NCBI GenBank assembly: GCA_002269645.1
Contig: NIVC01001761.1
Location: 176,666-240,665 of the forward strand
DNA from: Macrostomum lignano
Lineage: Eukaryota
Reading direction: 5' to 3'
Length of the DNA: 64,000 nt
Positions 6,105-64,000 of this stretch are shown here, piece after piece (position 1 is the first letter of the stretch; every line of letters begins with the position of its first letter). Position numbers and translations under genes: made by a program. The notes beneath the pieces were generated by a model. That model had not been told where the DNA came from and did not search any database. It was given only the letters and a program-made list of their open reading frames with translations.

Positions 6105-9100
6105 TCAGCCGCTGCATTCTCGCTGAGACGCGCCAGCGGCCGACATGGCAAACCGGTTGACCTCCTGGTAGAACTCCTGGCGCTCCTCCAGCAGCAGGCG
6201 GCGCTGAGACTCCAGGTGCTCGCGCTCCCTGTCCATCAGCGACTCCAGCTCATGGAAGTGGCGCAGCTTAGCTTCAATCTTCTTTGCCTGAGCCTCCACT
6301 AGAGAGCCCACCAGGCTCTTGATCCTGGACTCCTCAGCCTGTGCCAGCTGCTTGGCGCTTGCCGCCGCTGCGGCCAGGGCTGAGGCCGGCTCAGCCTTCT
6401 TGGCCTCTTCATCCGCTGCCTCTCTGGGACTCATGGCGGGATCTGCTGCCACCTTGGGACTCTTGGCGGGATCCGCTGCCGCCTTGGGACTCTTGGCGGG
6501 ATCTGCTGCCGCCTTGGGACTCTTGGCGGGATCCGCTGCCGCTTTGGGACTCTTGGCGGTATCTGCTGCCGCCTTGGGACTCTTGGCGGGATCCGCTGCC
6601 TCTTTGGGACTCTTGGCGGGATCTGCTGCCGCCTTGGGACTCTTGGCGGGATCCGCTGCCTCTTTGGGACTCTTGGTGGGATCCGCTGAATCCTTGGGAC
6701 TCTTGGCGGGATCCGCTGCCTCTTTGGGACTCTTGGCGGGATCCGCTGCCTCTTTGTCGCCGACGCTCTGCTGGTGAGCCTTGAGCACGCAGCTGGGAAT
6801 CTCGTCCCTCATCTTGGCGTACTCGTCCAGAGCAGCCTTGGTGGCGGCGCTGGCAATCCTGGGATCAACAGTGGCAGCCAGGAAGGCCACGGTGCACATG
6901 ATGGGGTTGCCGGCCTTGCTGAAGGGAATCGGCTGGTGGATCAGCGGGCCCAGCGCCTCTTCGGCGCCCTCTAAAAACGGATCCTCGATCGGCAGCTTCA
7001 GGAAGTGCAGCACGCACTCCTCCTGGGTGCGGGACCCCACGTGCTCGGCCACTCGGTTCCAGTCGTCTTTGAATAGCTCAAGGCCCTCCAGCAGGCTCAG
7101 CGTCTCCTGGTCAGTCCAGTCCGACTTGCGGCTGGCCGGCGGCTTGTCCGGCAGCTTCGAGCTCGCCTCGGACTTCTGGATGTCGCTAGCGGCGTCCTTT
7201 GAGCTGTCCTTGGCAGACGGATGAGCGGCGCCGTTCACTTTTTCGCTGGCGCCGGACGGCGGCGCGGGTTTCAGCGGCGCCAGACAAGCCGGGCTGTCCG
7301 ATAGGGCGCGGAAATTCGACGCAGATGGCGGGCCAAGAGCGGCGAGCTTGGACTCCTTGTCCACCTGTCGGTGTCCATGCAGGGGTGAACGAGGTGGATG
7401 CAGTGAGTCACGCGAGCTACGATGAGCTTACGGCTGAGGGAAACCCCGGACTAAGACTCAAACTCCTACTGTGGGGTCGAACAAAGACTCAAACGCCTAC
7501 TGTGGGGTCGGACAAAGACTCAAACTCTACTGTTGGGTCGGATAAAAACTCAAACTCTACTGTTGGGCCGGACAAAGACTCAAGCTCTACTGTGGGGTCG
7601 GACAAAGACTCAAACTCTACTGTGGGGTCGGACAAAGACTCAAACTCTACTGTTGGGTCGGATAAAAACTCAAACTCTACTGTTGGGTCGGACAAAGACT
7701 CAAGCTTTACTGTGGGGTCGGACAAAGACTCAAACTCTACTGTGGGGTCGGACAAAGACTGAAACTCTACTGTGGGGTCAGACAAAGACTCAAACTCTAC
7801 TATAGGTCAGACAAAGACTCAAACCCTACTGTGGGGTTTAGACAAAGACTCAAACTCTACTGTGGGGTTGGACAAAGACTCAAACTCTACTGTTGGGTCG
7901 GATAAAAACTCAAACTCTACTGTTGGGTCGGACAAAGACTCAAGCTTTACTGTGGGGTCGGACAAAGACTCAAACTCTACTGTGGGGTCGGACAAAGACT
8001 TAAACTCTACTGTGGGGTCGGACAAAGACTCAAACTCTACTGTGGGGTCGGACAAAGACTCAAACTCTACTGTGGGGTCAGACAAAGACTCAAACTCTAC
8101 TGTGGGGTTTAGACAAAGACTCAAACTCAAAGCAAAAACTCAAGTCCAGCCTCACCTGATAGTTGATGAGGCCCCACTGTTCCAGGAAAGCGTGCACCCT
8201 GAGGATGCCGCACACGTCGCCATGCAAATTCCGCCTGCAGGCAGTGAAGGTGAGGTACTCCTGCGGGTTGAGCCTGTAGGTGTCAATCATGAAGTTGCGG
8301 CAGGCCAGGTAGGCCTCAGGAGTTTTGGTCGGTCGGCCTTCGAGGAAGAACTCCGGAAGGCTGCGCCTCTCCAGCGCGTGGATGGAGTTGTAGTCGAACC
8401 AGGTGGCGTAGGAGGGCACGATGATGGCGTGCGCCTGCTCAGTCACCGTCACGTCGTCTGCTGCCGCTTTCTGCAGTTTAGAGCGCGTATTCAATGAAGC
8501 TAATTAATGCTGGGAATCCAATTCTTGGGATTCGTAATGAATGTTAAGAAATAATTGGCCTAAGAATTGAACTGTATGGTGGGATAACTGTTTATTTGAA
8601 TCGGATGCTGGAAATTATCTGTTGATATTCGAATTGGATGACGGGAATTCCTCTGATGGAATTTGGATTGGATGCCGGGAATTCGCAAGGATCAGATTGG
8701 ATGCCGGGAATTCCCCTGCTAAATTCAGATTGGATGCCGGGAATTCCCCTGCTGGATTCAGATTGGATGCCGGGAATTCCCCTGCTGGAATCAGATTGGA
8801 TGCCGGGAATTCCCTTGCTAGAATCGGATTGGATGCCGGGAATTCCCCTGCTGGAATCGGATTGGATGCCGGGAATTCCCCTGCTGGAATCAGATTGGAT
8901 GCCGGGAATTCCCCTGCTGGAATCGGATTGGATGCCGGGAATTCCCCTGCTGGAATCGGATTGGATGTCGGGAATTACCCTGCTGGAATCGGATTGGATG
9001 CCGGGAATTCCCCTGCTGGAATCGGACTGGATGCCGGGAATTCCCCTGCTGGAATCGGATTGGATGCCGGGAATTCCCCTGCTGGAATCGGACTGGATGC

Positions 9101-20899: not shown

Positions 20900-23800
20900 C
20901 TACTGCGGCCCGGCCTGGTCCGTCTCCATTGGCTGCGGCCCCTCCGCCTGGGCAGCGGCAGGCGGCTGCTCTGGCGCCCTGTCCGGCACCGGGGGCATCT
21001 CCGAGTCCGAGGGCGCGGCGCCGCGCGCCTCTGAGGCCAACGAAGGCGGCGGAGGCGCCGCCGGCGACGTCACAGAATCGCCGGAGGGGGTCACCGAAGC
21101 GGCGGCCGGCGCAGACGCTGGGGCCTCGTCGAGGGCTGCGGACAGAGTCGGAGGAGCGGCGGCGGTTGACTCAGCGCCCTGAGGAGCTTCAACAGCCGGA
21201 CCGGCCGCAGCTCCGGCAGCCGAGGCGACACTCGAAGCCTGCGGGGCGGCCGGCAGTTGCGGCTGGGCGGACAGCGAAGGAGGCTGCGGAGTTGCCGGCT
21301 GCTGCGACGTCGGGGGCGGCGGCGGTGGCGGCGGAGGCATGGCGGAATCGGAAGTTGGCACAGTCGATGCCTGAGCAGTCTGCTCAGCCAATTGCTGCTG
21401 CTGCTGCTGCTGCTGGCGGACTTCTTGAGCGGCCAGCTGGCGAGCGCGCTGCTCGGCCACGCGGTTCATCTCTTGGTAGAAGGCCTGGCGCTCCTGCAGC
21501 AGCTGCTGTCGCTGGGCTTCCAGCACTTCCCGCTCTCGGTCCATCAGCGCCTCCAGCTCCTGGAAGTGGCGCAGTTTGGTTTCAATCTTCTTCATCTGGG
21601 TCTCCACCAGCGAGGCCACCAGGCTCTTGATCTTCTTCTCCTCCACCTGGGCCAGGTGCTTGGCTTTGACAGCAGCGGCGGCCAGAACGGACGCGGCAGC
21701 GGCGCTCATCGTCTCCTTGGGATCGGCCGGGGCTGCGGCGGCGGCAGCGGGCGGCTGGCCGCTGGTCTCATTGGCCGCGTCAGCCGGCTCCTTATCGCCG
21801 GCTTCGGTTGAGGCAACCTCAGCAGCAGCTGCGGAAGCAGCCGGAGGACTCTTGGGCTTGGCGGCTTCACCTGCAGCGGGATCAGTCGTCACCGGCTCGT
21901 CGCCATTCGTTTTCGCGGCGGCGGCGGCGACAGACTCAGAGGAAGCAGCGGCGGCCGGGGCACCGCCGGAGTCGTCGCCTTCCTTCTTGACAGAGGCGGC
22001 GTCGCCGGCGGACTCGGCGGATGCGACAGCAGCTGGTGGCGCAGCGTCAGCCGTGGCAGCCAGAGCAGCGGAAGCGGCGTCCTCGGAGGCAGCAGACTTG
22101 TCAGCAGCAGCAGCAGGCGGAGCTCCGTTGCCCAGCGAGCTGGTGGCGGCCGCGGAGGCCTCCTTGTTGGCGCCGACGCTCTGCTGGTGAGCCTTGAGCA
22201 CGCAGTTGGGAATCTCGTCCCTCATCTTGGCGTACTCGTCCAGAGCAGCCTTGGTGGCGGCGCTGGCAATCCTGGGATCAACAGTGGCAGCCAGGAAGGC
22301 CACGGTGCACATGATGGGGTTGCCGGCCTTGCTGAAGGGAATCGGCTGGTGGATCAGCGGGCCCAGCGCCTCTTCGGCGCCCTCTAAAAACGGATCCTCG
22401 ATCGGCAGCTTCAGGAAGTGCAGCACGCACTCCTCCTGGGTGCGGGACCCCACGTGCTCGGCCACTCGGTTCCAGTCATCTTTGAACAGCTCGAGGCCCT
22501 CCAGCAGGCTCAGCGTCTCCTGGTCAGTCCAGTCCGACTTGCGGCTGGCCGGCGGCTTGTCCGGCAGCTTCGAGCTCGCCTCGGACTTCTGTCCGGCGGC
22601 GGACTGCGCTGCCGACTGAGCCGACGGCGCCTGTTGCTGCTGCTGTTGCGACTGAATCGCCGCCGTGCCGCCGGGCACTCCGGTGCCGCTGCCCTGCTGG
22701 GAGTCGCCGCTGGCAGCTGCAGCAGACACCGCGGGACTGTCCGCAGCGGAAGCCGCAGATGAGACCCCATGACCGTTGGAGGTCACAGTCGCTGTTGTGG
22801 TTGTCGTAGAGGCTGCGGTTGAGGCGGGCACCGCGGCGGTGGCGGCGGCGGCTGATACTGAAGCTTCGCTGGTGACGACAGCGGTTCCGCCGTTGCCGCC
22901 GCCAACATTGAGGAAGGGCGGAGCGGGCTTGAATGGCGGGTTGACGGGCGCCAGTCCGGCCGGGGTGTCCGCCAGCACGTGGAAATGCGAGGTTGACGGC
23001 GGCCCCAGAGCGGCGAGCTTGGCTTCGTTGTCAACCTGGGAAATCGGCGAGCTTCTACTTGACAAGTGCGGATGGGGTCGGACAAAGACCTAAACTCTAC
23101 TGTGGGGCCGGACAAAGACTCAAACTCTACTGTGGGGCCGGAGAAAGACCTAAACTCTACTGTGGGGCCGGACAAAGACTCAAACTCTACTGTGGGGTCG
23201 GACAAAGAGTCAAACTCTACTGTGGGGTCTAACAAAGGCTCAAACGCAAGCCCAGACTCAAGTTCAGCCTCACCTGGTAGTTGATGAGGCCCCACTGTTC
23301 CAGGAAAGCGTGCACCCTGAGGATGCCGCACACGTCGCCATGCAAATTCCGCCTGCAGGCAGTGAAGGTGAGGTACTCCTGCGGGTTGAGCCTGTAGGTG
23401 TCAATCATGAAGTTGCGATAGGCCAGGTAGGCCTCAGGAGTTTTGCTCTGTTTGCCCTTGGTGAAGAACTCAGGCAGGCCGCGCTCCTCCAGCGCGTGGA
23501 TGGAGTTGTAGTCGAACCAGGTGGCGTAGGAGGGCACGATGATGACGTGCGCCTGCTCAGTCACCGTCACGTCACCGCCAGCGGCAGTCTGAAAATTTTA
23601 GGTTTAGGTTAGAGTTGGGGTTTAGGTTGGGGTTGGGGTTTAGGTTGGGGTTGGGGTTTAGGTTAGAGTGAAGTTTAGGTTAGAGTTGGGGTTTAGGTTA
23701 GAGCTGGGGTTAAGGTTGGGGTTGGGGTTTAGGTTGGGGTTGGGGTTTAGGTTAGAGTGAAGTTTAGGTTAGAGTTGGGGTTTAGGTTGGGGTTGAGGTT

Positions 23801-49594: not shown

Positions 49595-52500
49595 CTAGCG
49601 GTGCGATCTCGCAGACTCCAGGCTCACCTGCAGCTCCCAGGGATCTTCTTCATCATCGCTGTCGGACCCGGTGGTGGTGTACTGCCCGCTGTCCACCCGG
49701 ACGTCTTGTAGGCGGATCTCCGCCACTGCGGGCGCCATCTCGCCGGCGATGCCGCAACGACCAGCGTCCGGAGCATCGACGGCGTCGGCGTTGTTTTCTA
49801 CAACGTCAACGACAAGGGCTTCTTCAGCCTTACCGACGTCGGGCGAATCGGCATCGGCGACGACCTCCTGCGGCGACTCCTCCTCGACATAGAGCTGGCG
49901 CTGCAGAATTGAGTTCCGCTTGCCCTGCCGCTGCCCCGACGGCCGGCCGTTCATCGTTGGTCGCTCGGCATCAGGCGACGATGGCGTCGAGTTGCCGCCC
50001 TTGTCGACAGGCACCGCTGTCGAGGCAGCGGTGGAGGCTGCGGTGTTAGCAGCGTCCTCCACGATGGTGTCCAGCCCAGAGGACTGTCGGGAGGTGCTCG
50101 GCGGGGTGCCGAGGTTGTTGGTGAGGGCGCTGAGCGAGCGGCGGTGCTGCGCCCCGGCGATGCCGCCAAAGATGCCGGCGGACATGGCGGCCATGGACTT
50201 CAGGGCGTTGTTGGACTGGCGCTTGCTGATGTTTACGACTGTGTGGGCGGGAGGGACGGCAGAGGGTTTCTAGTTGAACTATTTCTCGGAAACCAATGCC
50301 TAATATTCAATGATGAGATTCTTGGAAATCATTTTCTTATATAGTATGTCGTAGAAACCGATGCTTTAGTTGCGACGAACCCTTGGAAACAATGATGTAG
50401 TTTTCCTAGAAACTAATCCCGTAGTTCTCTTAGAAACAACTAATGTAGTTTTCTCAGAAACCAGTGCTTTAGAATTCCTAGAAGAATTGTTATTACTCGT
50501 ATATTCCCAGACACTTGGCTGCAGGGTGGTCCGTAGACACAGTGGTTAAGCGTGGGTCGCCCATTCCGCTAGATCCCAGACGTAGAGACACAGAAGATGA
50601 TCTCCATTACCGAATCACTTGAAATCTTTGCTACTTTCCGTAAAAAAAGTTCTCTTCGCTCATCCTTGTATTTAGATATTAAGTTAGCTTAGACTAGAAA
50701 ATGGAATGTCTGACTCAATAATTCCCGCCTGCGTTCTGCAGTCCGCAACACGTGGCCCATCTAATGAACTTCTCGCGTCTGCTCACGCTGAAGCCCCCCC
50801 CCCAACTATCTGGCTGAGGGTCTGCGGTGCGCTGCGAAGTGCAGCGGAAGAGACGAAGAAAGAGCGACCTCTCAGCTCAGGACTCGAGCCCCCGGGGGCG
50901 CTTGGGGATTCCGATGCTCCCCAAACCCCCACTGGATTCCCGCCAATAGACGGGACAAAAAGCGCTCAGGCGGCCACTGAGGCCTCCTTGACAGACAGGC
51001 GGCCTTCGCGGCGCAGGAAGCTGGCGACGACTGCTCGCGGACTTTTGGCTCGCGCGCGCGCCCCCACTTCAGAATTCTATCCGCCTGCCTGCTCCAGGAG
51101 CTGCTACCGGCTGCCACTTGAAAGCCATTTATCATCTTCTTGACGACCAGAAAGGACGGACGGACGGCCGCCGCCGGAAGGAAAGCCCGCAGTCTGGCCG
51201 TGGGGCGAGGCGGCTGCACTTTTCACTGGGAACTCCATCAACTGGTGCTACGAAGAGCGCTGAGAGGGGGGCTGTCCCTCTTCACTTCTCTCTCTCTCTT
51301 TGTCACCCTTGCAGCCCCTCTTCTTCTTTTCACTCTGGCTGTGGATCTCCATTTCCACATATCCCTAACACGCATTCGCTCCCCATCTCAGTCTCCCCAT
51401 CATCTCAGTTTCCTCACTTCTGACACGCTGGAGATTGACGTTAAAAAATAGAATTCACAGCTCAGGTGAGGCAACTCACACCGCGGCTTGCAGTTGGCAA
51501 TCTGCTCCTCCCCGCCGCCCAGTTCTCTGCAGAGCTCCTCCAGGAACAGGATGTGCTTCTGAAAGTGAACAGCGAGATTGTGGTTGGCGCTCTTGCTGGC
51601 AGCTGCTTCTCTGCTCGAGTTATCCATCATGCGCGCCGCCTCGACTCTCGGGCCCTAATTGATCCCCGGCCGCCTGTCCCGCCCCGGCTAATCCCCTACT
51701 GCTGCCAGGCCGCGAGATCATTCCGCTTCTCAACTTTTGCTACTAGGGGCGGCATAGGGAGACTGAGTAGTTAATTACCCCAGCCTGTTTGCCCGGGGAA
51801 TTCGGGGCGCGCTGTTTGCAGACGCATTTCTGGTACAGAATTCCTGCCTCATGTTGCGACAGCCATTCTGCCCCCCCCCTCAGTCCAATCTGAGCTCCCT
51901 GCCCTGTGCGGCTCGTGCTTTCTGTCAATAGGCAGCTGGCAGCCCTAAGTAGTATTTGACTTTGAAACTCCCCCTGCTTTTATGGCACCTCCTGCAGGTC
52001 GCGCTCCGTCTCCAGGGTGTCACACTTCATCTCGGACATTCGCCTGGCTCGCTTCTGCAGCTGGATTCTGAACTCGCCACGCTGCTTCTCGTGCATCATC
52101 AGGCCTGCGGACGGTGTTGCGGCTTTGTTTTAACACGGGGGCTTGAGGGCCCGAAGTCTATGGCCAGCCCTGCTGCCGGGCTTGGGGGCCCGAAGTCTAT
52201 GGCCAGCCCTGCTGCCGGGGCTTGGGGGCCCGAAGTCTATGGCCAGCCCTGCTGCCGGGTTTTGGGAGACCGAATTCTATGGCCAGCCCTGCTGCCGGGG
52301 TTTGGGGGCCCGAAGTCTATAGCCAGCCCTGCTGCCGGGGTTTGGGGGCCCGAAGTCTATGGCCAGCCCTGCTGCCGGGGTTTGGGGGCCCGAAGTCTAT
52401 GGCCAGCCCTGCTGCCGGGGTTTGAAGGCGCAAAGTCTATAGCCAGCCCTGCTGCCGGGGTTTGAAGGCCCGAAGTCTATGGCCAGCCCTGCTGCCGGGA

Positions 52501-55500
52501 TTTGAAGGCCCGAAGTCTATGGCCAACCCATAGACTTCGGGCCGGGGCTTGCTGCCGGGGCTGCCGGGGCTTGGGGGCCCGAAGTCTATGGCCAGCCCTG
52601 CTGCCGGGGTTTGGGGGCCCGAAGTCTATGGCCAGCCCTGCTGCCGGGGCTTGGGGCCCGAAGTCTATGGCCAGCCCTGCTGCCGACAAAAACAGGTTTC
52701 GTTCTGGTATAAACAGATTGTAAATTCGCTCTCTTGTATTCGAAATTTTAAACACAGAATTTATAGGAGACTGGCAATACAAGACAAAGCTGACAGGGAA
52801 TTACTTATTCAATTTGATGCTATATCAGCGGGTGTACTTTATTGTGACACAGTGTGATACGCAGGACCCAGTTAACACCGTGTGGCCACTAAAGGTGTAA
52901 GATCATGGTTTAGCTCTAACTCGCCTTGTCAATCTCAAATGCTGCTCAGTGAATAGTGCACCAAAGTCGCTCAGGCCCTGACTAAAAGAAACGTGAATGG
53001 AATGCGAGCCTCGAGAGACACTGGAGAAAGGAAGTGCCAGAGATTGGCTGGGGCAAATTGGGCTGAGATGCAATTTGTAGTCGGGCCGCAGCTCCCCAGC
53101 CCACCGGTGAAATTTTCTGAATTCAAGCGTGCAAACGAGGTACAGGCGAGCTGAGGACATGCCCGATGCGGCTTCAACTGAGAGGCAGAGGCAAAGGCCA
53201 GAAAATGTCGATAACTGGCTGGCACAGATGACTGCTCGCATTTGCCCACGGGTGGGTCTCGTTGCGTTTCTTCTCTATCCGTTGCCGAGCAGTTCCCCCC
53301 CCCCGCCGCATCGGAAAGGTACGGGATGGGGGCCTTCTACTTCTCCATCGACTAGTCCATTCCCCGATGAAAAGTCCCCGATCCTTCGATCTGTGCCGAC
53401 CCGTGCAGTCGAGTAACTCGTAAAAAAAGGGCAGCCTCAGCCAAGACTCATTACTGGCTTGTTTTTAATCACTCGCTAATAATTTCCAATCTCTTCTGCC
53501 GTGAAAAAAATAAAGTCAACTGATTCCACGGATAGAGATGAATACTGCGGTAACCCTCTATGCATGCAGATTTATCAGTTTAACTGTATAGGCAGACAAT
53601 AAACAGGTCGAATAACCAACTTCAGCCCTTCTCATACTGGTCAATTTAATCAAGTGTACAGAGGTAGTGCGAGTGTACACGTAGACAGAGACCCTTTTGT
53701 AAATAATTGAGGGCGTTGGCCTGGAATGCCGAAATTGCAGTGCATAGGGAAATCTAATTCAGAAGATTAATTTCTGATGAGGTACTCAGTTACAAACCCG
53801 CTAGTTTACATTTAAATTCATTTTAATAACTTTTACTAAAGCTTGTTAATATCTGCGCACTTCTGCATCTGCGAGTGATTTCGACTTGTGGGATTAGAAA
53901 GTCGCTGAACTTTTATGTAAGCACTATTATTAATGGCCTTACTGATAATGCGAATATGGAGATCCTCTGCTGGGGCAGGAGAAGAAATGTGAGACTGATG
54001 GGGCCTAGCATCTATAGCCATATTGGCAGCTGGGGGGGGGGGGCTCAGAAGTGCTGAATACGAACTCCTGCTATTGTCCGTGCTCTGCAAGTGTCGGGAG
54101 AACCCAGATGTCTGGCTTTTCCTCTCCCAGCAGCGAGCATCCTGCACAGAACCCGTCACGCACCATTGATGACGCGAACAATTCGCCAGAGCAGGAACAG
54201 GACCATGACTGACACTTCCGTGGACTCCAGCTTCACGAAGACGATGTCCGCCACAAATGAGATCATGATCACCACTGCGTCGACGATCTGAAATCGAAAT
54301 TTTAATAACAATTCGATTAATTATAAGCCCGCGCGTTGATCCGCAAAATTACCTTTTTGAGATCTTAGGCACACTTTGCAAACACAGGAGAAGTTGATAA
54401 CAAGTTTTCTCTGTACTGCAGAGAAGTTCATCTAGTTTTCTAGTAACCAGAACTGCATGCATTGCTTTAGATATTCGCAAGTTTCTGGGGGTCTCCCTAA
54501 TGTACCTCCTTAATTTTTATTGTGTTTTGTTTCAAAGAAAGTTCAGAAGAGTTCTGCAAGATACGCCAGTCGATTCAAGCATTCAAGTATTTCAAGAAGG
54601 CATTTCACTCGGTCGCCAGGTCAATGGAGCTCCGAGCGTCAATGTGTCGGAGCGGCTGGTCTGTCTCTACCATCATGGCGATACACAATCACTCGAAAGC
54701 TGTTGTTTCGACATCGGACGGCCTATCAGACTTCTTCAAGACGTCCTCTGGGATGCTCCAAGGAGAACGCGGATTGACGCCAATATCGCCCCTCCTGTCC
54801 TCAGCCGTTGAGGACGCCCAGCGATAGCACTCTATCGTCATGCCAGGCTGGTCCGTCCAAGGGACCTGTTGCGCTGTCGGCGATTCCAATTGAAAGGTCA
54901 CCTCATCAGCAGTGTCCACAGTCGCAGTGTCCACAGACGGTGCAGGAAGTGCTGCTGCTAACGCTGCAGGCACCCTACCGAAGCGCACTCGGCGTTTCGT
55001 CGACTGCCTGCTGGCTGATGCCGGCGCCCCGGATTCGGTCGGTTGCACGGCTTACGTTGTGTCCAGGCCCAGAGATAAACCCGGTGCCGCTGCTCTCAAT
55101 AAGGACTTGAACAACAACGCATTGAGCTTTTTTGTTGTTTAACGAATTTCATCTCTTGTGTGAAAAAAACTAGACATTTCGAATTCTCTCCTTTAAAATG
55201 ACGCCCTCTCAATGGACTGAATTACAAGACTCCCTTCCCAATTCGCAAAATCTCGTTTCCTTGTGGGCTCGAAACCATCAGGAAAAGATAAACTCTTAAA
55301 ATGTATCTAACGGCAAAGTGCGCAAAAGACGCAGCCGCCTCGGTTGTGCGCCTAAAGTTCGCAGCCGAGCGAGAAATGCGGAACAAGAATGTCCTGCCTG
55401 GTGAATATTTCATCAGCATGCCAGTCCCCTGGCCGCTGGGCCCGAGTCAAATTCCAGACAGGGCGTCCCTGTTCCTGCACTGCCAGCGTCTTCTCCGCGC

Positions 55501-58500
55501 CTCATCCTACTGCGCAATAATTGATTGACTCATCCCAGATCTGGCTGTCTCGGTCCCGGCGGATTACCGACCAGGAAAGAGCGCATTTGTGCAGTGCTTT
55601 GTACAGCGCGCTGTGCAACAGCAAGGCCTCGCATTAATGTAGCTTCAGTTTTCCGTGCGAATCGGAAGGGCGCTCTTTGCCAGCTTCATTGAGCTGGCTG
55701 ATTCGAAGTATCTGTGTGGAAGATCTTTTCAGATCCTGGAAATTCGCACTTAACTGTTTGTGCACTGAAGCATTCATTTTATTGAAGGATGAGCCTCGAC
55801 GAAATTAAGCATCGAATGGTTTCCAACTTTTGCGTTATCGGAATTGCCATGGTTGGGCTCGATCGGTGGCTTAACTCTCGAGTGTTCATTCGGTCCCACT
55901 GTTAATTTGTGAACCCTTGTCTAAGTGTACGAGCGTACTGTTAATATTTTTGTTCCAAATTTTTGTAGGTAGAAGATAATAATACACGAACTTGCAGCAT
56001 CAATCTAGTGGACGTCGCAAGAGCAGGACGTATTGAAATTCTGTGAAGCACCGAGTGAATCTGAACACGATCTCCTGTTCTGGACCCTGATATTGACCTC
56101 TTGGGCGAAGTCAGACGGGCACTCGGCGTTTCGTCTACTGCTTTCTGGCTGACACCCAGTTTCCAAAAGCTACCCTTTGATCTAAAAAGAGTCACTTGAG
56201 CTGTTTTTATCGTCGATAATGACTCAGACGTGCTCCATTCGCAGATGGACCGGTTATCGGTGCGCATTCGCGAGGGCACAAATACACCCCGGGTGACGAG
56301 CGGCCTCCGGTTATCAAACTTGCCGTCGAAAGCAGATTTCCTAATTCGAAAATCATGATGCAAATACCTTTGAAAACATTTCCTCCGCCTCTAATATTAG
56401 TCAATATTGCTGGCTTTGAAGTCGGCTCGAGTTTCCTCGTAGTGAAATTGGAGGCCTGTTTTTGCGGCCTGAATCCGCGTAGGCAAGGGGTTGGCTGGAT
56501 GGGAATATGTTCGGTTTGTCAGGCCGCTTATTAATTCACTGCAACGGCTTCGAAGCCCTTCTGGACCAAAATAGACAGTCCATGCGAGTTGGAACGCGTG
56601 CTGCTGACGGCTTTCAGGTACGAAATGGACAATAATATTTTTCGACAGCATATTTTCAAGGCGTTTTTTTAATCTATTTTTTATGCTTCTTCGGTTCAGT
56701 GGCACCTGGATAGTTGTCTCAGTTTCTCTTTCTGACATCTTGTTAATAAGGGCAGCAGGAGTCAACCTTGCAGTTTGGAAATTAATTACACACTAAGCAG
56801 TGCGCCTGCGGAGCCTTTGATTTTACCTGCAGCTTCAAACTCGAAGTCCAAGTTCAACTAATCTTTTAGATGCCCTTCTTCGACGAACTCAATGTCAAAG
56901 CGAGTACTGAGAATTTGAGCTATCAATTTTGCAAGACACAAGTCTGATTCAGATTCCATTGTACAATTATCTACTCACCTCGAACTTCTCTCGCACAAAG
57001 TTCCGACCGAGGCAGACAATTTTCAGCGCCACCTCGAGGACGAACAGGCCGAGAATCCCAATGCTGACGAAGTGCAGCACGGCTGAGACGTCGTGCAGTA
57101 CCTTGGCGTGGCTGAACTCCTGCTGGAAGTTGGCGAACGCCGAAGTCGCCGACGAATACGACGGTTGGTGTCATCCCAGCGCGGCGGCGCCGGCGTCGCT
57201 GGCGACGTGTCGACGCAACGCGGCTGGTGGGACCCGGCTACCGACGGACTGGGCGAGCTCGCTCCGGGCTGCCCGCCAGCCACCGAGGAGGTCACGTTGC
57301 ATGAGATGCTGGAGTTCTGACTCAGCGTCAGGAGCACGTCGGCCATGTTGGTCACCAGGCGCTCGGCAAACTGAGGCGACGACGTCAGCTCCGGACTGAA
57401 GGCCGGCAGCAGGAGGCCTCGCTCGCCGAGCTGCTTGGCGAATGTTCGATTGACGAATCCGGCAGTCTGCACGAAGGCGTCCTCGAGCTCCTGCTTCTCG
57501 CTGCAATTCGCAAATTTGTGAGCGCCGGTGTTTCGGATTCAGGCAATTTTGAGCTTGAGAAGTTTGGAGTTGTGAAACCGACCCAGCGAAATAGCATCGA
57601 GACAAAGTGACCGACTCGCTTTGGGTGGATCCCTAGGATAGCAGCTCCATTTCCGATTGGAGTCTCCTACCATAGGGTTTTTTGCATCAACTGATAGCTC
57701 GTATCGGGATGCAGTGCTCGGTGCCACAATCCATTGGTTACACAGCCACATGGACTCGAGCTTCAGCTCTGCTAACTCTCATCTGTTTTCTACATGTCTT
57801 CATCCCTGACTAATCCTTTGGATAACTAAAATCAACAGCATTGAGCTTAAATTCCTGAGATTCCGAGAACCCTTTAGAAAATCCCTAAACTGCGTAAGCA
57901 GTTTCCATCATCAACAAAATTCTCCGCTATTCGGCCATTTTCGAATATTCCGTCCTTGCAGCCTCTTCCATCATCTTCCTAAGCCCCTTTCAGGTAAATC
58001 TCAAATTCCAAAGATTTCCACAAACCCATGCAGATTAAACCTGGATGCGGTGTGCATCCCGGATGGATGCATCGCGACTCCAGGAACGATGGATGAATAA
58101 ATATGGAGGCTTCAATCGGAGAATAAACCCCACCCAGCATATCCTGACAGCCCACAGCCAGGCACTGAGCAAATCCTGACAGCCCACAGCCAGGCACTGA
58201 GCAAATCCTGACAGCCCACAGCCAGGCACTGAGCAAATCCTGACAGCCCACAGCCAGGCACTGAGCAAATCCTGACAGCCCACAGCCAGGCACTGAGCAA
58301 ATCCTGACAGCCCACAGCCAGGCACTGAGCAAATCCTGACAGCCCACAGCCAGGCACTGAGCAAATCCTGACAGCCCACAGCCAGGCACTGAGCAAATCC
58401 TGACAGCCCACAGCCAGGCACTGAGCAAATCCTGACAGCCCACAGCCAGGCACTGAGCAAATCCTGACAGCCCACAGTCAGGCACTGAGCAAATCCTGAC

Positions 58501-61500
58501 AGCCCACAGCCAGGCACTGAGCAAATCCTGACAGCCCACAGCCAGGCACTGAGCAAATCCTGACAGCCCACAGCCAGGCACTCAGCATATCCTGACAGCC
58601 CACAGTCAGGCACTGAGCAAATCCTGACAGCCCACAGTCAGGCACTCAGCATATCCTGACACCCCACAGACGGCACCTATAGTCCTGGCTACTTACTGGT
58701 GATGGCCTTGATCTCCAGGATGATCTCGGCGATCACAATGACGGCGTCGATGAGCACGAAGGCGCACAGGATGATCTGCACTACGTTGGACCGGATTGCG
58801 TACAGCAGCCGCTCCTTCCATCTGAAATGCCGGTGGCGGGAGGAGCGCCTGAGGCTTCCGCTGGCGTCGCCATTTGCCGCCGCCGTTGCAGCTGCCGCCG
58901 CCGACCGAGGCGTGGACGGCAACGTCGGCGACAGGAGGCTGAGCAGCGACGATGAAGCTGACGAGGAGGAGGCGGCGGCAAACAGCAGCGGCGGCCTGGC
59001 TGGTGGCCCGCCGCCAAGGGCTCCTCCGTCGTCGCATTCATCGGATTCGTCACCGGATGACCGGTGGCGATAGCGGCTGCGCCCAAACCGAGGCAGCTTG
59101 ACTGCTTCTGTCTGCTTCTGTCTGCTTCTGTCTGCTTCTGTCTGCTTCTGTCTGCTTCTGTCTGCTTCTGTCTGCTTCTGTCTGCTTCTGTCTGCTTCTG
59201 TCTGCTTCTGTCTGCTTCTGTCTGCTTCTGTCTGCTTCTGTCTGCTTCTGTCTGCTTCTGTCTGCTTCTGTCTGCTTCTGTCTGCTTCTGTCTGCTTCTG
59301 TCTGCTTCTGTCTGCTTCTGTCTGCTTCTGTCTGCTTCTGTCTGCTTCTGTCTGCTTCTGTCTGCTTCTGTCTGCTTCTGTCTGCTTCTGTCTGCTTCTG
59401 TCTGCTTCTGTCTGCTTCTGTCTGCTTCTGTCTGCTTCTGTCTGCTTCTGTCTGCTTCTGTCTGCTTCTGTCTGCTTCTGTCTGCTTCTGTCTGCTTCTG
59501 TCTGCTTCTGTCTGCTTCTGTCTGCTTCTGTCTGCTTCTGTCTGCTTCTGTCTGCTTCTGTCTGCTTCTGTCTGCTTCTGTCTGCTTCTGTCTGCTTCTG
59601 TCTGCTTCTGTCTGCTTCTGTCTGCTTCTCCTGCTTTTCGATGCTTCTAAATCCTTCGGGGTCCAAGTTTGTCAGCTCAGATAAGGCCGAGTCTTAGGAA
59701 GGCCGCACTGCTCAGTAGTCGGACTCTTTTGATCCGGGTCAAGCAATTCCCAACCCCCCCCCCCCTTTCAGCCTCAGCCGGTGCCAACCCGCGGAGAGCA
59801 TCAGGGAAGGCAGGGAGCGAGTTGTCCGGAATGCCTGCTCCCATTGGCCCAGTGAGATTGGATGCTCAGCTGAGGAGTTCCAGACGGAGGCTTGAGCAGG
59901 GAAGGGACCATGAGCTGCTTGTTGATTAAAATAGGTTGTTTGTTAAACCGCTTCGATAGCTTTTGAATCCAAGTCGCTTTATTTGGTGCTTTCGATCGAA
60001 AGGATTTGGTATTTAAATCCCTCAATTGCGACATTCAGTGGTCAATTTTTTAACTCAGACACAGATTTGTCCTCTTTTAGCTCGAGATTGTGCCGAACTG
60101 AGAGAAAGGCCTGAGGGAGCAGAACTAAGGTCAGGCCAGCTTCCCAGACTAATTACCGCTGGGTTCCCCGGCTCTCGGGAGAGTCTCGAACTCAGACTAA
60201 GTGCGGCCGCTCTGTGACAGCTCGCGTCTCCATCAAGGCATCAAAGGCTCCGGGAGGGGGGGAGCTGGAGAGGCGGCCTCTCTGTGTGCCCCTGGATTCC
60301 TGGGAATTCCCAGCTAGCAGCGAAGGTAGCGAAGACGAGGCGGCGTTGTCACGGAAACGAGGACTCGAGCAGGGAGCTCCGGAGGCGGAGTCTGGGGGGC
60401 GGCGGCTGTTTTTGGCATGGAATTTTCCAGTTTGCGCGCAACAGACGCGGTGGGGGGGGGGCATTTTTGTTCATTCTGCTACTGCGGAGGAGGGGCAGGG
60501 AGGACAAAGAGGCGGGTTTTCCCCGCTCCCCAATCATTGATTGATCCCTTTGCGAAAGCGAGCTCGGCAAGTGAGCTGCTCACAGTCACCGCCCTTTATA
60601 TTCAGAAGAAGTGATGAAGGAAAGGCAATAAAAAGCACAAGCAGCTGTGAGGTCACTGCTCAGATAGGGAGAGTGAAAGTGAGTTTATTGTATTGGATTA
60701 TGATTATTATTATCGCACACGCATTGTCCCGGGCACAAAGGCCGATAAAAAAGCAGCCGATTCCTCTTTTGAGCACAAAGGCGAGCGGACGGAAAATCCA
60801 GGATTAAAACAAAAGGTTTGGCAGGGGAAACTCCGGCAGGGGAGGCTTCGATCGCGAATTAAAAGCTGGGCGGAACTGCCGCCTTCCGGTTGCTATGGAT
60901 ATTTTTAGCTGCCTTGCCATACGAGCTCGAAATTCGATCAATTGGTAGACGGCCGATCCGCTCAGTAGCCGAATAATGTGTTTTAAAAGTACACCATTTT
61001 AGCAATCCACTTCTTTTATTCATCCTTGACGTTGGCTAGATTAGCAATCCATTTTATCCAATTCATAACTGATTAGCTAGATTAGCAATTCAATTCTATT
61101 CCTTCATTCATGATTGGCTAGATTAGCAATCCATTCTGTTTCTATATTAATTCAGTGCTTTGGCTAGACTAGCAATCCATTTTATCCAATTCATTCATGA
61201 TTAACAAACCCAATTTTACGCGTGCTGCAGAATACGCAACAGAAGCATTAAAGAGTCAAAGGAAAAATGAATAAACAATTTCATCCTTCAAACTCTATCC
61301 ATTTGCAAAACACGCATAGAAAATTTAGCTTTTTCCTACTGTCAGTAGTGCAATATGTTAGAAATCTAAAATACAATATTTTTCTGTAACCAAAACCGGC
61401 TGCCCTCTGCAACACGCCAAGGGATATCGATTCCGGGGATTACTGGGCTGCACATGGAGGGGGAAAGTTTGTTTTGGGACAAGTTTGAGCTTTAAGAAGA

Positions 61501-62821
61501 TTAGCTGTCGATTGCCGCTGCAGACTAAGCTAATTACCAGCGCTCTATCCCGCTGCCGGGATCTGAAAGGCCGGCCCCTGCGACTCATAATCTGCTCCAG
61601 TCGATCATTCTCTGTCCCCGGGGATCGAGACGGATCTCCCCTTGTCTTGAAGGCTTTCAGTTTCTGTGCCATTATTTTTAAACTGCAAACCGGCTGTCTG
61701 TCAACTGGCCCGCCGGGACGCCGCCTCAAATCGATGAGGGATATTGGGCCTGCAGCTGCTGCCTGTTCGCAATTGGATTGCTAATCTAGCCAACCATGGA
61801 TTTGCTAATACAATGGATTGCTAATCTAGCAATCATGGATTAGCTAATACAATGGATTGCTAATCTAGCCAATCATGGATTAGCTAATACATTGGATTGC
61901 TAATCTAGCCAACCATGGATTTGCTAATACAATGGATTGCTAATCTAGCCAATCATGGATTTGCTAATACAATGGATTGCTAATCTAGCCAATCATGGAT
62001 TAGCTAATACAATGGATTGCTAATCTAGCCAATCATGGATTTGCTAATACAATGGATTGCTAATCTAGCCAATCATGGATTTGCTAATACAATGGATTGC
62101 TAATCTAGCCAATCATGGATTAGCTAATACAATGGATTGCTAATCTAGCCAATCATGGATTTGCTAATACAATGGATTGCTAATCTAGCCAATCATGGAT
62201 TTGCTAATACAATGGATTGCTAATCTAGCCAATCATGGATTTGCTAATACAATGGATTGCTAATCTAGCCAATCATGGATTAGCTAATACATTGGATTGC
62301 TAATCTAGCCAATCATCGATTAGCTAATACAATGGATTGCTAATCTAGCCAATCATGGATTTGCTAATACAATGGATTGCTAATCTAGCCAATCATGGAT
62401 TTGCTAATACAATGGATTGCTAATCTAGCCAATCATGGATTTGCTAATACAATGGATTGCTAATCTAGCCAATCATGGATTTGCTAATACAATGGATTGC
62501 TAATCTAGCCAATCATGGATTAGCTAATACAATGGATTGCTAATCTAGCCAATCATGGATTAGCTAATACAATGGATTGCTAATCTAGCCAACCATGGAT
62601 TAGCTAATACAATAGATCGCTAATCTAGCCAATCATGGATTAGCTAATACAATGGATTTCAGCTCAAGCAACAGCAGCGGTAAGAAATCACTCACGACTT
62701 TTTTCTCCGCTTCGTATTCACGGAGCCGATTTCGCTCTGCAGGATGGCCAAGTCAATGTTGTCCTTCTGCAGCTGCTTGATGAACTTTTTGTTGTTCATC
62801 CAGCCGAACTGGTAGGAGTAC
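49595..62821 (-). CDS. HVCN1: Hv1-like voltage-gated proton channel (voltage-sensor-domain-only protein); 5' end not located
   Basis: Exons 62696-62821, 58697-59076 (S1 QIILCAFVLIDAVIVIAEIILE with the selectivity Asp), 56979-57500 (loop + S2 LHFVSIGILGLFVLEVALKI...KFE), 54164-54287 (S3 IVDAVVIMISFVADIV + S4 VLFLLWRIVRVING), 51989-52104 and 51480-51558 (coiled coil), and 49595-50238 (low-complexity tail). The junction after S1 and a frame break near 57165 are unresolved. Confidence 0.85.
52140..52685. repeat. ~41-bp minisatellite in Hv intron
   Basis: Unit GGGGCCCGAAGTCTATGGCCAGCCCTGCTGCCGGGGTTTG. Confidence 0.95.
54500..55135 (+). mobile_element. Internally deleted RTE-clade LINE in an Hv intron
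   Basis: RT fragment DFFKTSSGMLQG, then QTVQEVLLLTLQAP and RRFVDCLLADAG, homologous to 45030-45130. Ends in a (CAA)n tail. Confidence 0.7.
58140..58670. repeat. 32-bp minisatellite in Hv intron
   Basis: Unit CCTGACAGCCCACAGCCAGGCACTGAGCAAAT. Confidence 0.95.
59102..59628. repeat. Perfect 10-bp tandem repeat in Hv intron
   Basis: (TCTGCTTCTG)n, about 52 units. Confidence 0.97.
61775..62655. repeat. 40-bp minisatellite, with inverted partial copies at 61030-61200
   Basis: Unit AATGGATTGCTAATCTAGCCAATCATGGATTWGCTAATAC. Confidence 0.95.
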
Positions 62822-62949
62822 CTGCGGCCGGTGACAGCTTGACATTCAAATGTACCTTCTTTGCTTCAGAATGCGAATCGTTGAAATTTTGATTCTTTAT
62901 GTCCTGCTTTCGGCTTGGATTTGTTTGCTTGTGTTATGAATCATGCTGA

Positions 62950-63290
62950 TAACCAGCACTGTACATTGCGTCTATAGATAACCAGCACTGTACATTGCGT
63001 CTATAGATAACCAGCACTGTACATTGCGTCTATAGATAACCAGCACTGTACATTGTGTCCATAGATGACTAGCACTGTACATTGCGTCTATAGATAACCA
63101 GCACATTGTGTCCATAGATGACTAGCACTGTACATTGCGTCTATAGATAACCAGCACTGTACATTGTGTCCATAGATGACTAGCACTGTACATTGCGTCT
63201 ATAGATAACCAGCACATTGTGTCCATAGATGACTAGCACTGTACATTGTGTCTATTATGTCTATAGATAAGCAGCACTTTACAATGTGTC
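62950..63290. repeat. 29-bp minisatellite
   Basis: Unit AGATAACCAGCACTGTACATTGCGTCTAT. Confidence 0.9.
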
Positions 63291-63919: not shown

Positions 63920-64000
63920 AAAGTGTGCTCACCCTTATTTAGTCCCAGCACTTTAACACCCAGAATGAGCAGCAGCTAAGAGAGGAAAGGCCTTAACAGG

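Follow-up and report, generated by a model that had tools for sequence, protein, structure and literature searches.

The window analysed here is a stretch of 64,000 nucleotides from the flatworm Macrostomum lignano (assembly GCA_002269645.1, contig NIVC01001761.1, positions 176,666 to 240,665), and it carries on its minus strand, from ~62.8 to 49.6 kb, a gene of at least seven exons for a predicted voltage-gated proton (Hv) channel. Within this gene, a preliminary description had singled out positions 54164-54287 for an S4 segment in which the first gating arginine (R1, R205 in human Hv1) is replaced by leucine. This segment is a real exon of the multi-exon gene (Table 1). It is bounded by an acceptor (tttcag/ATC, with the slash at the exon border) and a donor (AATG/GTGCGT), so that the coordinates correspond to exactly one exon, encoding S3 and S4. 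The gene to which it belongs probably falls into a proline-less LxWRxxR branch of a lophotrochozoan Hv family, whose mollusc LPWRxxR branch includes the channel AcHv3 of Aplysia californica.

Where human Hv1 has RLWRVARIIN, S4 of the window protein reads LLWRIVRVIN. A phmmer search of PDB sequences aligns FLLWRIVRVING of the window with LRLWRVARIING of mouse and human Hv1, which are the best matches (3WKV, E-value of 3.3e-20, and 5OQK, E-value of 5.7e-20, respectively), in agreement with the Hv-type voltage sensor proposed at the outset. The Trp and Asn residues of S4 fix the register of this alignment and thereby place the leucine at human R205. Its codon, CTG at 54194-54192, is followed by CTC (Leu), TGG (Trp, 54188-86), and CGA (R2, 54185-83), and further 3' by CGC (R3, 54176-74) and AAT (Asn, 54167-65). 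The equivalents of R208, R211, and N214 are kept, leaving R2 and R3 as the only two S4 arginines, just as the preliminary description had it. Its reading of a retained S1 aspartate is likewise borne out: FVLIDAVIV is encoded on the same strand at 58734-58760, in an exon 4.5 kb upstream of the S3-S4 exon, with GAC (58748-58746) as the codon of the selectivity-filter Asp.

A tblastn search with human Hv1 recovers the S1, S2, and S3-S4 exons in order and on one strand, which argues against a chance match. As predicted from these exons, the protein would carry the full set of Hv permeation residues, comprising the S1 Asp, Phe/Glu/Lys in S2, Glu/Asp/Asp in S3, and Trp-Arg-x-x-Arg-x-x-Asn in S4. Two other identities, which had been named as potentially refuting an Hv assignment, are excluded by core residues, phmmer E-values, and Pfam. 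TMEM266 (HVRP1) has the non-polar V111 and M185, three S4 arginines together with K213 and D217, and orthologues in vertebrates only (PMC6392501). In the window protein, which is from a flatworm, both core positions are Asp, and S4 has two arginines, keeps the Trp, and continues after R3 with Asn. The voltage-sensing phosphatases (VSPs) match ~16 orders of magnitude more weakly than Hv1 (Ci-VSP, 3e-4; Cav3.2 is similarly weak at 2e-4), Pfam finds no phosphatase domain, and both the S1 Asp and the S4 Trp are present, whereas VSPs have neither an acidic filter residue in S1 nor a tryptophan in S4.

The leucine codon CTG lies a single base from the arginine codon CGG, and the substitution could in principle be a sequencing artefact, or else a private mutation that arose recently in a canonical RxWRxxR channel. 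This explanation, to which we assign practically no weight, is ruled out by the recurrence of the same S4 in M. lignano models and in flatworm orthologues. Four separate protein models of M. lignano (P0001, P0002, P0157, and P0175) contain LLWRIVRVING; the three with the LLWR motif other than P0001 represent two paralogues, one of them just 60% identical overall. An aliphatic residue, moreover, occupies the R1 position in all 67 R1-less relatives, drawn from six phyla.

Relatives lacking the first S4 arginine

The part of the window protein from S2 to S4 is 99% identical in UniRef to A0A1I8I230 (P0001) and 91% identical to A0A1I8HS36 (P0002), both annotated as M. lignano 'Voltage-gated hydrogen channel 1'; a second paralogue is represented by P0157 (A0A1I8IXJ9). 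To place these proteins more widely, 172 relatives were aligned to S1 and S2-S4 profiles, and they divide into three classes by S4 motif. The canonical RxWRxxR class (n=105) has a median length of 252 residues and a median distance of 14 residues from the S1 Asp to S2. The L[LIVM]WRxxR class (n=40, including one ILWR, one LLWQ, and one LFLR) has corresponding values of 650 and 143, and the [LV]PWRxxR class (n=27) of 581 and 154. The tail after S4 has a median of 328 residues in the LxWR branch versus 70 in canonical Hv1. None of the 40 LxWR-branch proteins has a proline before the S4 Trp.

All other flatworm homologues found have Leu at R1. The motif L[LIV]WRxxR is present in every recovered cestode, trematode, and monogenean homologue except one from Cichlidogyrus (P0014, LFLRVLR), in which the Trp is also lost. 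The branch takes in the cestodes Rodentolepis, Hymenolepis, Spirometra, Sparganum, Taenia, Mesocestoides, Anoplocephala, and Hydatigera, the trematodes Clonorchis, Opisthorchis, Fasciola, Calicophoron, Schistosoma, and Heterobilharzia, and the monogenean Cichlidogyrus. Outside the flatworms it includes the annelid Owenia (LLWR), the bryozoan Bugula (LLWR), the brachiopod Lingula (LMWR), and the nemertean Tubulanus (ILWR), whose proteins cluster and share motifs with those of flatworms. Members with LPWR include the gastropods Physella and Patella and the nemertean Lineus. Two Lingula isoforms of the LxWR family bear the NCBI name 'transmembrane protein 266', which is an automatic name. In the cestode and trematode orthologues P0004, P0005, P0007, and P0008, the S2 Glu equivalent to E153 has given way to Thr, Cys, or Gln, whereas it is retained in M. 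lignano.

Across 25 R1-less proteins, the S1 Asp, the equivalents of E171, D174, S181, and D185, and the Trp, R2, R3, and Asn of S4 are invariant, and Leu occupies R1 in at least 90% of them. The LxWR branch is further marked by motifs outside the membrane domain. An N-terminal motif, [DEQ][DNS]xD...x..E, occurs in 30 of the 40 LxWR proteins and in neither the 105 canonical nor the 27 LPWR proteins. Among the branch motifs KDNID...E near the N terminus, LQKRARR after S4, and CKP, each is found in 30-35 of 35-40 members and in no LPWR or canonical protein; the tail motif NALKSIAALTTGxMGG is also specific to the branch. A stretch following the coiled coil, L..LC...G..E..I..C, is common to the LxWR and LPWR branches.

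A neighbor-joining tree was computed from 161 columns, with the R1 and x columns masked, on a set without AcHv3 and without an outgroup. All 53 R1-less sequences form one clade, with a transfer bootstrap of 0.87 and a classical bootstrap of 0.29, and within it the window protein and the two M. lignano paralogues lie in a flatworm clade with a classical bootstrap of 0.92. Being conserved across phyla, Leu at R1 is neither an error nor private to Macrostomum; it appears to be ancestral and under selection, with an R1-less state that is old and widespread in Spiralia. The suggestion that the window protein represents a non-canonical Hv subfamily of its own lineage therefore stands in part: the subfamily is non-canonical, but it is not special to the lineage, as it spans Platyhelminthes, Annelida, Bryozoa, Brachiopoda, and Nemertea and, in its proline form, Mollusca.

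A profile of 32 canonical Hv1 sequences was also run against a large protein database. The best 120 of its 382 matches, in a comparison that did not extend to planarians, contain no flatworm sequence; they do contain canonical Hv1 of Lingula, Tubulanus, Lineus, Owenia, and Aplysia, all of which have R1-less paralogues too. The absence of flatworms from these best 120 of 382 matches is suggestive of a loss of canonical Hv1. That flatworms lost the three-arginine channel and rely solely on R1-less LxWRxxR channels is a tentative reading of these sequences, and we hold it to be somewhat doubtful. If it were true, the R1-less type might be the only Hv that flatworms have, parasites among them. The M. 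lignano protein would then offer a natural, proline-free test of R1 loss alone, be its effect leak or weak gating, and that effect would constitute the sole Hv activity of an animal in which transgenesis and RNA interference are available.

Exon structure and the frame of the loop exon

Exons were mapped by tblastn with 18 homologues (17 LxWR relatives and the M. lignano paralogue P0002), the flatworm homologues having been recovered by an exhaustive phmmer search, and splice sites were read directly (Table 1). The N-terminal cytoplasmic exon is matched by nine of these homologues, eight from flatworms and one from a brachiopod, with E-values down to 6e-9. Neither a start codon nor a 5' boundary was found for it, and no in-frame ATG lies 5' of its RYSYQFGW motif (62824-62870, minus strand); translation may hence start in an unfound exon, possibly beyond position 64000, or through trans-splicing. 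For the S1 exon, the Logan contig L001 has the same boundaries and 73% identity. This is the sole related genomic contig found, and it spans the S1 exon only, with no loop.

Table 1. Exons of the proton-channel gene and tandem arrays in the window (a slash within a splice site marks the exon border)
Feature	Position	Strand	Sequence or content	Borders and evidence
N-terminal cytoplasmic exon	62696..62823	-	RRYSYQFGWMNNKKFIKQLQKDNIDLAILQSEIGSVNTKRRKK; RYSYQFGW...KQLQKDNID motif	donor TC/GTGAGT, phase 2
S1 exon	58697..58821	-	(S)WKERLLYAIRSNVVQIILCAFVLIDAVIVIAEIILEIKAIT	acceptor cag/A, donor A/GTAAGT (phase 1)
S1-S2 loop and S2 exon	56979..57500	-	EKQELEDAFVQTAGFVNRTFAKQLGERGLLLPAFSPELTSSPQFAERLVTNMADVLLTLSQNSSISCNVTSS... 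then ...SAFANFQQEFSHAKVLHDVSAVLHFVSIGILGLFVLEVALKIVCLGRNFVREKFE	donor GAG/GTGAGT
S3-S4 exon	54164..54287	-	IVDAVVIMISFVADIVFVKLESTEVSVMVLFLLWRIVRVIN + G (first base of a Gly codon)	translation, tblastn, phmmer, splice sites
R1-equivalent codon (human R205)	54192..54194	-	CTG = Leu	
C-terminal exon 1	51989..52104	-	(G)LMMHEKQRGEFRIQLQKRARRMSEMKCDTLETERDLQE; helix continuing S4, putative coiled coil	tblastn
C-terminal exon 2	51480..51558	-	KHILFLEELCRELGGGEEQIANCKPR / ...LCRELGGGEEQIANCKPR; conserved L..LC...G..E..I..CKP motif	
C-terminal exon 3	49628..50238	-	(F)VNISKRQSNNALKSMAAMSAGIFGGIAGAQ... / ...NALKSMAAMSAGIFGGIAGAQ... to ...DDEEDPWELQ	
Tandem array	52138-52685		40-mer x14	
Tandem array	58136-58676		32-mer x17, 97% matches	
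Tandem array	59102-59629		10-mer CTGCTTCTGT x53, 100%	
Tandem array	61774-62658		40-mer x22, 96%	
Tandem array	62948-63255		29/58-mer x11	

C-terminal exon 1 is identical to the M. lignano model P0156. In C-terminal exon 3, the GTGAGC that follows DPWELQ is either a further donor or the beginning of a 10-codon read-through to a stop. The UniProt models P0175 and P0177 of the second M. lignano paralogue run on from DPWELQ into a B-box/NHL-type protein, an extension that is probably a fused gene prediction; no B-box/NHL gene lies downstream of the gene copy in the window. The predicted protein has at least ~570 residues, of which ~130 form the S1-S2 loop and ~290, encoded by three exons, follow S4. 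Pfam reports Ion_trans above cutoff and no other domain, and both the gene model and its homologues of 400-960 residues consist of S1-S4, a coiled-coil-like helix, and a tail, with no further transmembrane block. The AlphaFold model of the paralogue P0157 likewise contains S1-S4 only, with a single helix (312-379) from S4 onward and a predicted local distance difference test score (pLDDT) of ~90 in the transmembrane part. Foldseek finds only weak, uninformative voltage-sensor matches to this model in the PDB (E ~1), an outcome probably due to its long loop and its one extended helix.

The loop between S1 and S2 is encoded by an open reading frame (ORF) at 57500-57200 (EKQELEDAFVQTAGFVNRTFAKQLGERGLLLPAF...NSSISCNVTSS) with three N-x-S/T sequons, fitting an extracellular loop. 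A homologous stretch is carried by the paralogue models P0157 (AITSEKVALEGAFVKTASFVNETF...), where it runs unbroken from S1 to S2, and P0175 (A0A1I8GWV1), which is truncated at the N terminus and runs from the loop into S2, and this establishes the ORF as coding. Joining S1 straight to S2 was rejected, as the phases do not match and the conserved loop ORF sits in between.

All exon junctions are phase-consistent except those of the loop and S2 exon. As assembled, this exon measures 522 nucleotides, one away from a length that would fit the required 2 mod 3; the frame shifts between its loop and S2 parts, and that of S2 is interrupted by a TGA at 57173-57171. The S1 donor has phase 1, as in L001, whereas the AG acceptors before the loop ORF give phase 0 or 2, and no canonical GT-AG path through S1, loop, and S2 in the assembly keeps the frame together with all conserved residues. 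P0001, a UniProt proteome model of the same or a near-identical locus, is open here and differs by three single-base indels within ~100 nucleotides.

One explanation is that the locus is a decaying duplicate, a pseudogene with intact transmembrane exons and a loop exon broken by single-base indels. In addition to the broken phases, the off-length exon, and the open frame of P0001, the existence of several near-identical copies in M. lignano (P0157, P0174, and P0175) would fit such an origin. We nevertheless consider it unlikely, as the other exons (~1,300 coding nucleotides) have open frames and consistent phases and match P0001 and P0156 at 99-100% identity, and all indels fall inside ~340 nucleotides of GC-rich, low-complexity sequence. 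Local frameshift artefacts are evident in other M. lignano models as well, such as 'LFLLCAHCRVING' in P0174, so that indel errors may be common in assemblies of this species, and splice variants that would recover the frame can be proposed (TCG/GTAGCC ... TTCCAG/CAG; GCGAG/GC). Assembly indels in GC-rich, low-complexity sequence are thus the likelier explanation of the two, and the S4 finding is independent of the frame of this exon.

The surrounding DNA is eukaryotic, and the long introns of the gene are packed with long, clean tandem arrays (Table 1), several of which yield long spurious ORFs, for example of GGPKSMASPAAG repeats. Elsewhere in the window, a segment is duplicated ~15.4 kb apart (6754-7178 versus 22167-22591, 98.8%; 7953-8455 versus 23073-23573, 92.6%). 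It includes a reading frame that we take to resemble part of a SWIRM/SANT-type chromatin protein.

Predicted function and comparison with known Hv channels

On this assignment, protons would be conducted through each subunit's own voltage-sensing domain, and the subunits would dimerize via the helix that continues from S4, as the AlphaFold helix of P0157 suggests. Because only two charges remain in S4, gating is predicted to depend less steeply on voltage than in canonical Hv1, in line with the lowered apparent gating charge of human R205A. The analogy with AcHv3 further suggests that the channel may be partly open at negative potentials, giving a proton 'leak', and may do its main work in intracellular membranes. 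A clearly weakened voltage dependence appears to us an evenly balanced prospect. A true leak, which again would follow from the analogy, is rated below it because the AcHv3 proline is missing from the window protein.

Alternatively, the LxWR proteins may no longer be proton channels but voltage or pH sensors that signal via their conserved tail, as proposed for TMEM266, with the loss of R1 reflecting this new job. Their tail after S4 is long and conserved, with the branch-specific LQKRARR, CKP, and NALKSIAALTTGxMGG motifs, the E153 equivalent is replaced in the neodermatan members noted above, and one monogenean protein lacks even the S4 Trp (LFLRVLR). However, the S1 Asp, the D185 equivalent, and the Trp, R2, R3, and Asn of S4 are invariant across the family, and it is just these residues that TMEM266 has lost (V111, M185; PMC6392501). 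AcHv3, which shares with these proteins the missing R1, the large loop, and the long tail, does conduct protons. We therefore judge a purely sensory role to be quite improbable.

Several points weigh against placing a functional window channel beside AcHv3. The loop and S2 exon cannot be read in one frame with GT-AG splicing, so that the copy in the window may not make protein at all. The node uniting the LxWR and LPWR branches has a low classical bootstrap (0.29), and core identity to LPWR proteins (33-36%) is equal to that to the best canonical Hv1 (36%). According to the AcHv3 paper, replacing individual S4 arginines by Ala in human or mouse Hv1 has not been reported to cause leak (PMC10911540), and none of the papers found gives electrophysiological recordings of a proline-less LxWR member.

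The closest system with measured properties is AcHv3 (Chaves et al. 2022, PMC10911540), whose S4 motif, LPWRxxR, has Leu in place of R1 (L429) and a proline ahead of the Trp. The channel is selective for protons and leaks them, and its proton conductance (gH) changes e-fold per ~60 mV, versus 4-6 mV for AcHv1 and AcHv2; which of these effects stem from the missing Arg and which from the proline could not be told apart by its authors (PMC10911540). This is the leaky mollusc paralogue without the first Arg to which the preliminary description had referred. The window protein resembles AcHv3 and the mollusc LPWRxxR proteins in the Leu at R1, the retained Trp-Arg-x-x-Arg-x-x-Asn, the S1 Asp, a large S1-S2 loop with sequons (its frame being broken in this assembly), and a long cytoplasmic tail with the L..LC...G..E..I..C stretch after the coiled coil. 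The point estimate of the neighbor-joining tree with masked motif columns puts it in one clade with the LPWR proteins, at the low classical bootstrap given above. In contrast to AcHv3, it has Leu (CTC) rather than proline before the Trp, and its branch is set apart from the 27 LPWR proteins by the N-terminal KDNID and the C-terminal LQKRARR, CKP, and NALKS...GG motifs. Functional measurements on the Hv3-type (LPWR) channels compared come from AcHv3 alone.

No Hv without R1 other than AcHv3 has been recorded, and the S4 of AcHv3 departs from the canonical one at two neighboring residues (Arg to Leu and x to Pro). In the flatworm branch only the first of these changes is present, the rest of S4 being canonical, and the branch could therefore serve to assign the leak and weak-gating effects.

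A 2023 review (PMC10377628) describes 'unconventional' Hv channels with large S1-S2 loops, large intracellular domains, and xPWRxxR, and mentions proline-less large-loop relatives in Annelida, Bryozoa, and Nemertea (section 2.1.4). By its sequence, and by its grouping with the Owenia, Bugula, and Tubulanus proteins, the window protein belongs to this proline-less group. The same review places Platyhelminthes under 'other Metazoa', ascribes a lengthened S3-S4 loop to two Schistosoma channels, and makes no mention there of R1 loss. The schistosomatid sequences examined here differ from that statement: P0010 (Schistosoma mekongi) and P0013 (Heterobilharzia) have a short S3-S4 loop and a ~240-residue insert between S1 and S2. 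A literature search found no paper reporting the flatworm S4 motif or recording a proline-less member. The R1-less, large-loop Hv subfamily is hence already known in outline, and flatworm membership is the new part.

Like canonical Hv1 (HVCN1), the window protein is a four-helix voltage sensor without a pore domain, with S4 running into a C-terminal helix, and it has equivalents of the S1 Asp, F150, E153, K157, E171, D174, D185, W207, R208, R211, and N214. It differs in the Leu at R205, which departs from the RxWRxxR signature, although AcHv3 is a functional proton channel with the same exception. Its S1-S2 loop is also much longer (~130 versus ~14 residues), as is its tail after S4 (~290 versus ~70), and the second Zn-binding His (H193) has no counterpart in its short S3-S4 loop.

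Neutralization of the outermost S4 charge in an otherwise canonical S4 is further shared with engineered R1 mutants of Hv1, the change in the window being natural. In human R205A, the apparent gating charge is lowered (z-delta of 0.57 versus 0.90), and R1Q activates faster with a shift to negative voltages (PMC10377628). A platyhelminth voltage sensor that naturally lacks S4 arginines is also known from N.at-Kv3.2, a flatworm Kv channel with a natural gating-pore current that conducts through its sensor at negative voltages (Klassen et al. 2008, summarised in PMC3982104). Unlike the window protein, N.at-Kv3.2 is a K+ channel of six helices in which His and Gly take the places of R1 and R3, and the two are homologous only in the voltage-sensor fold.

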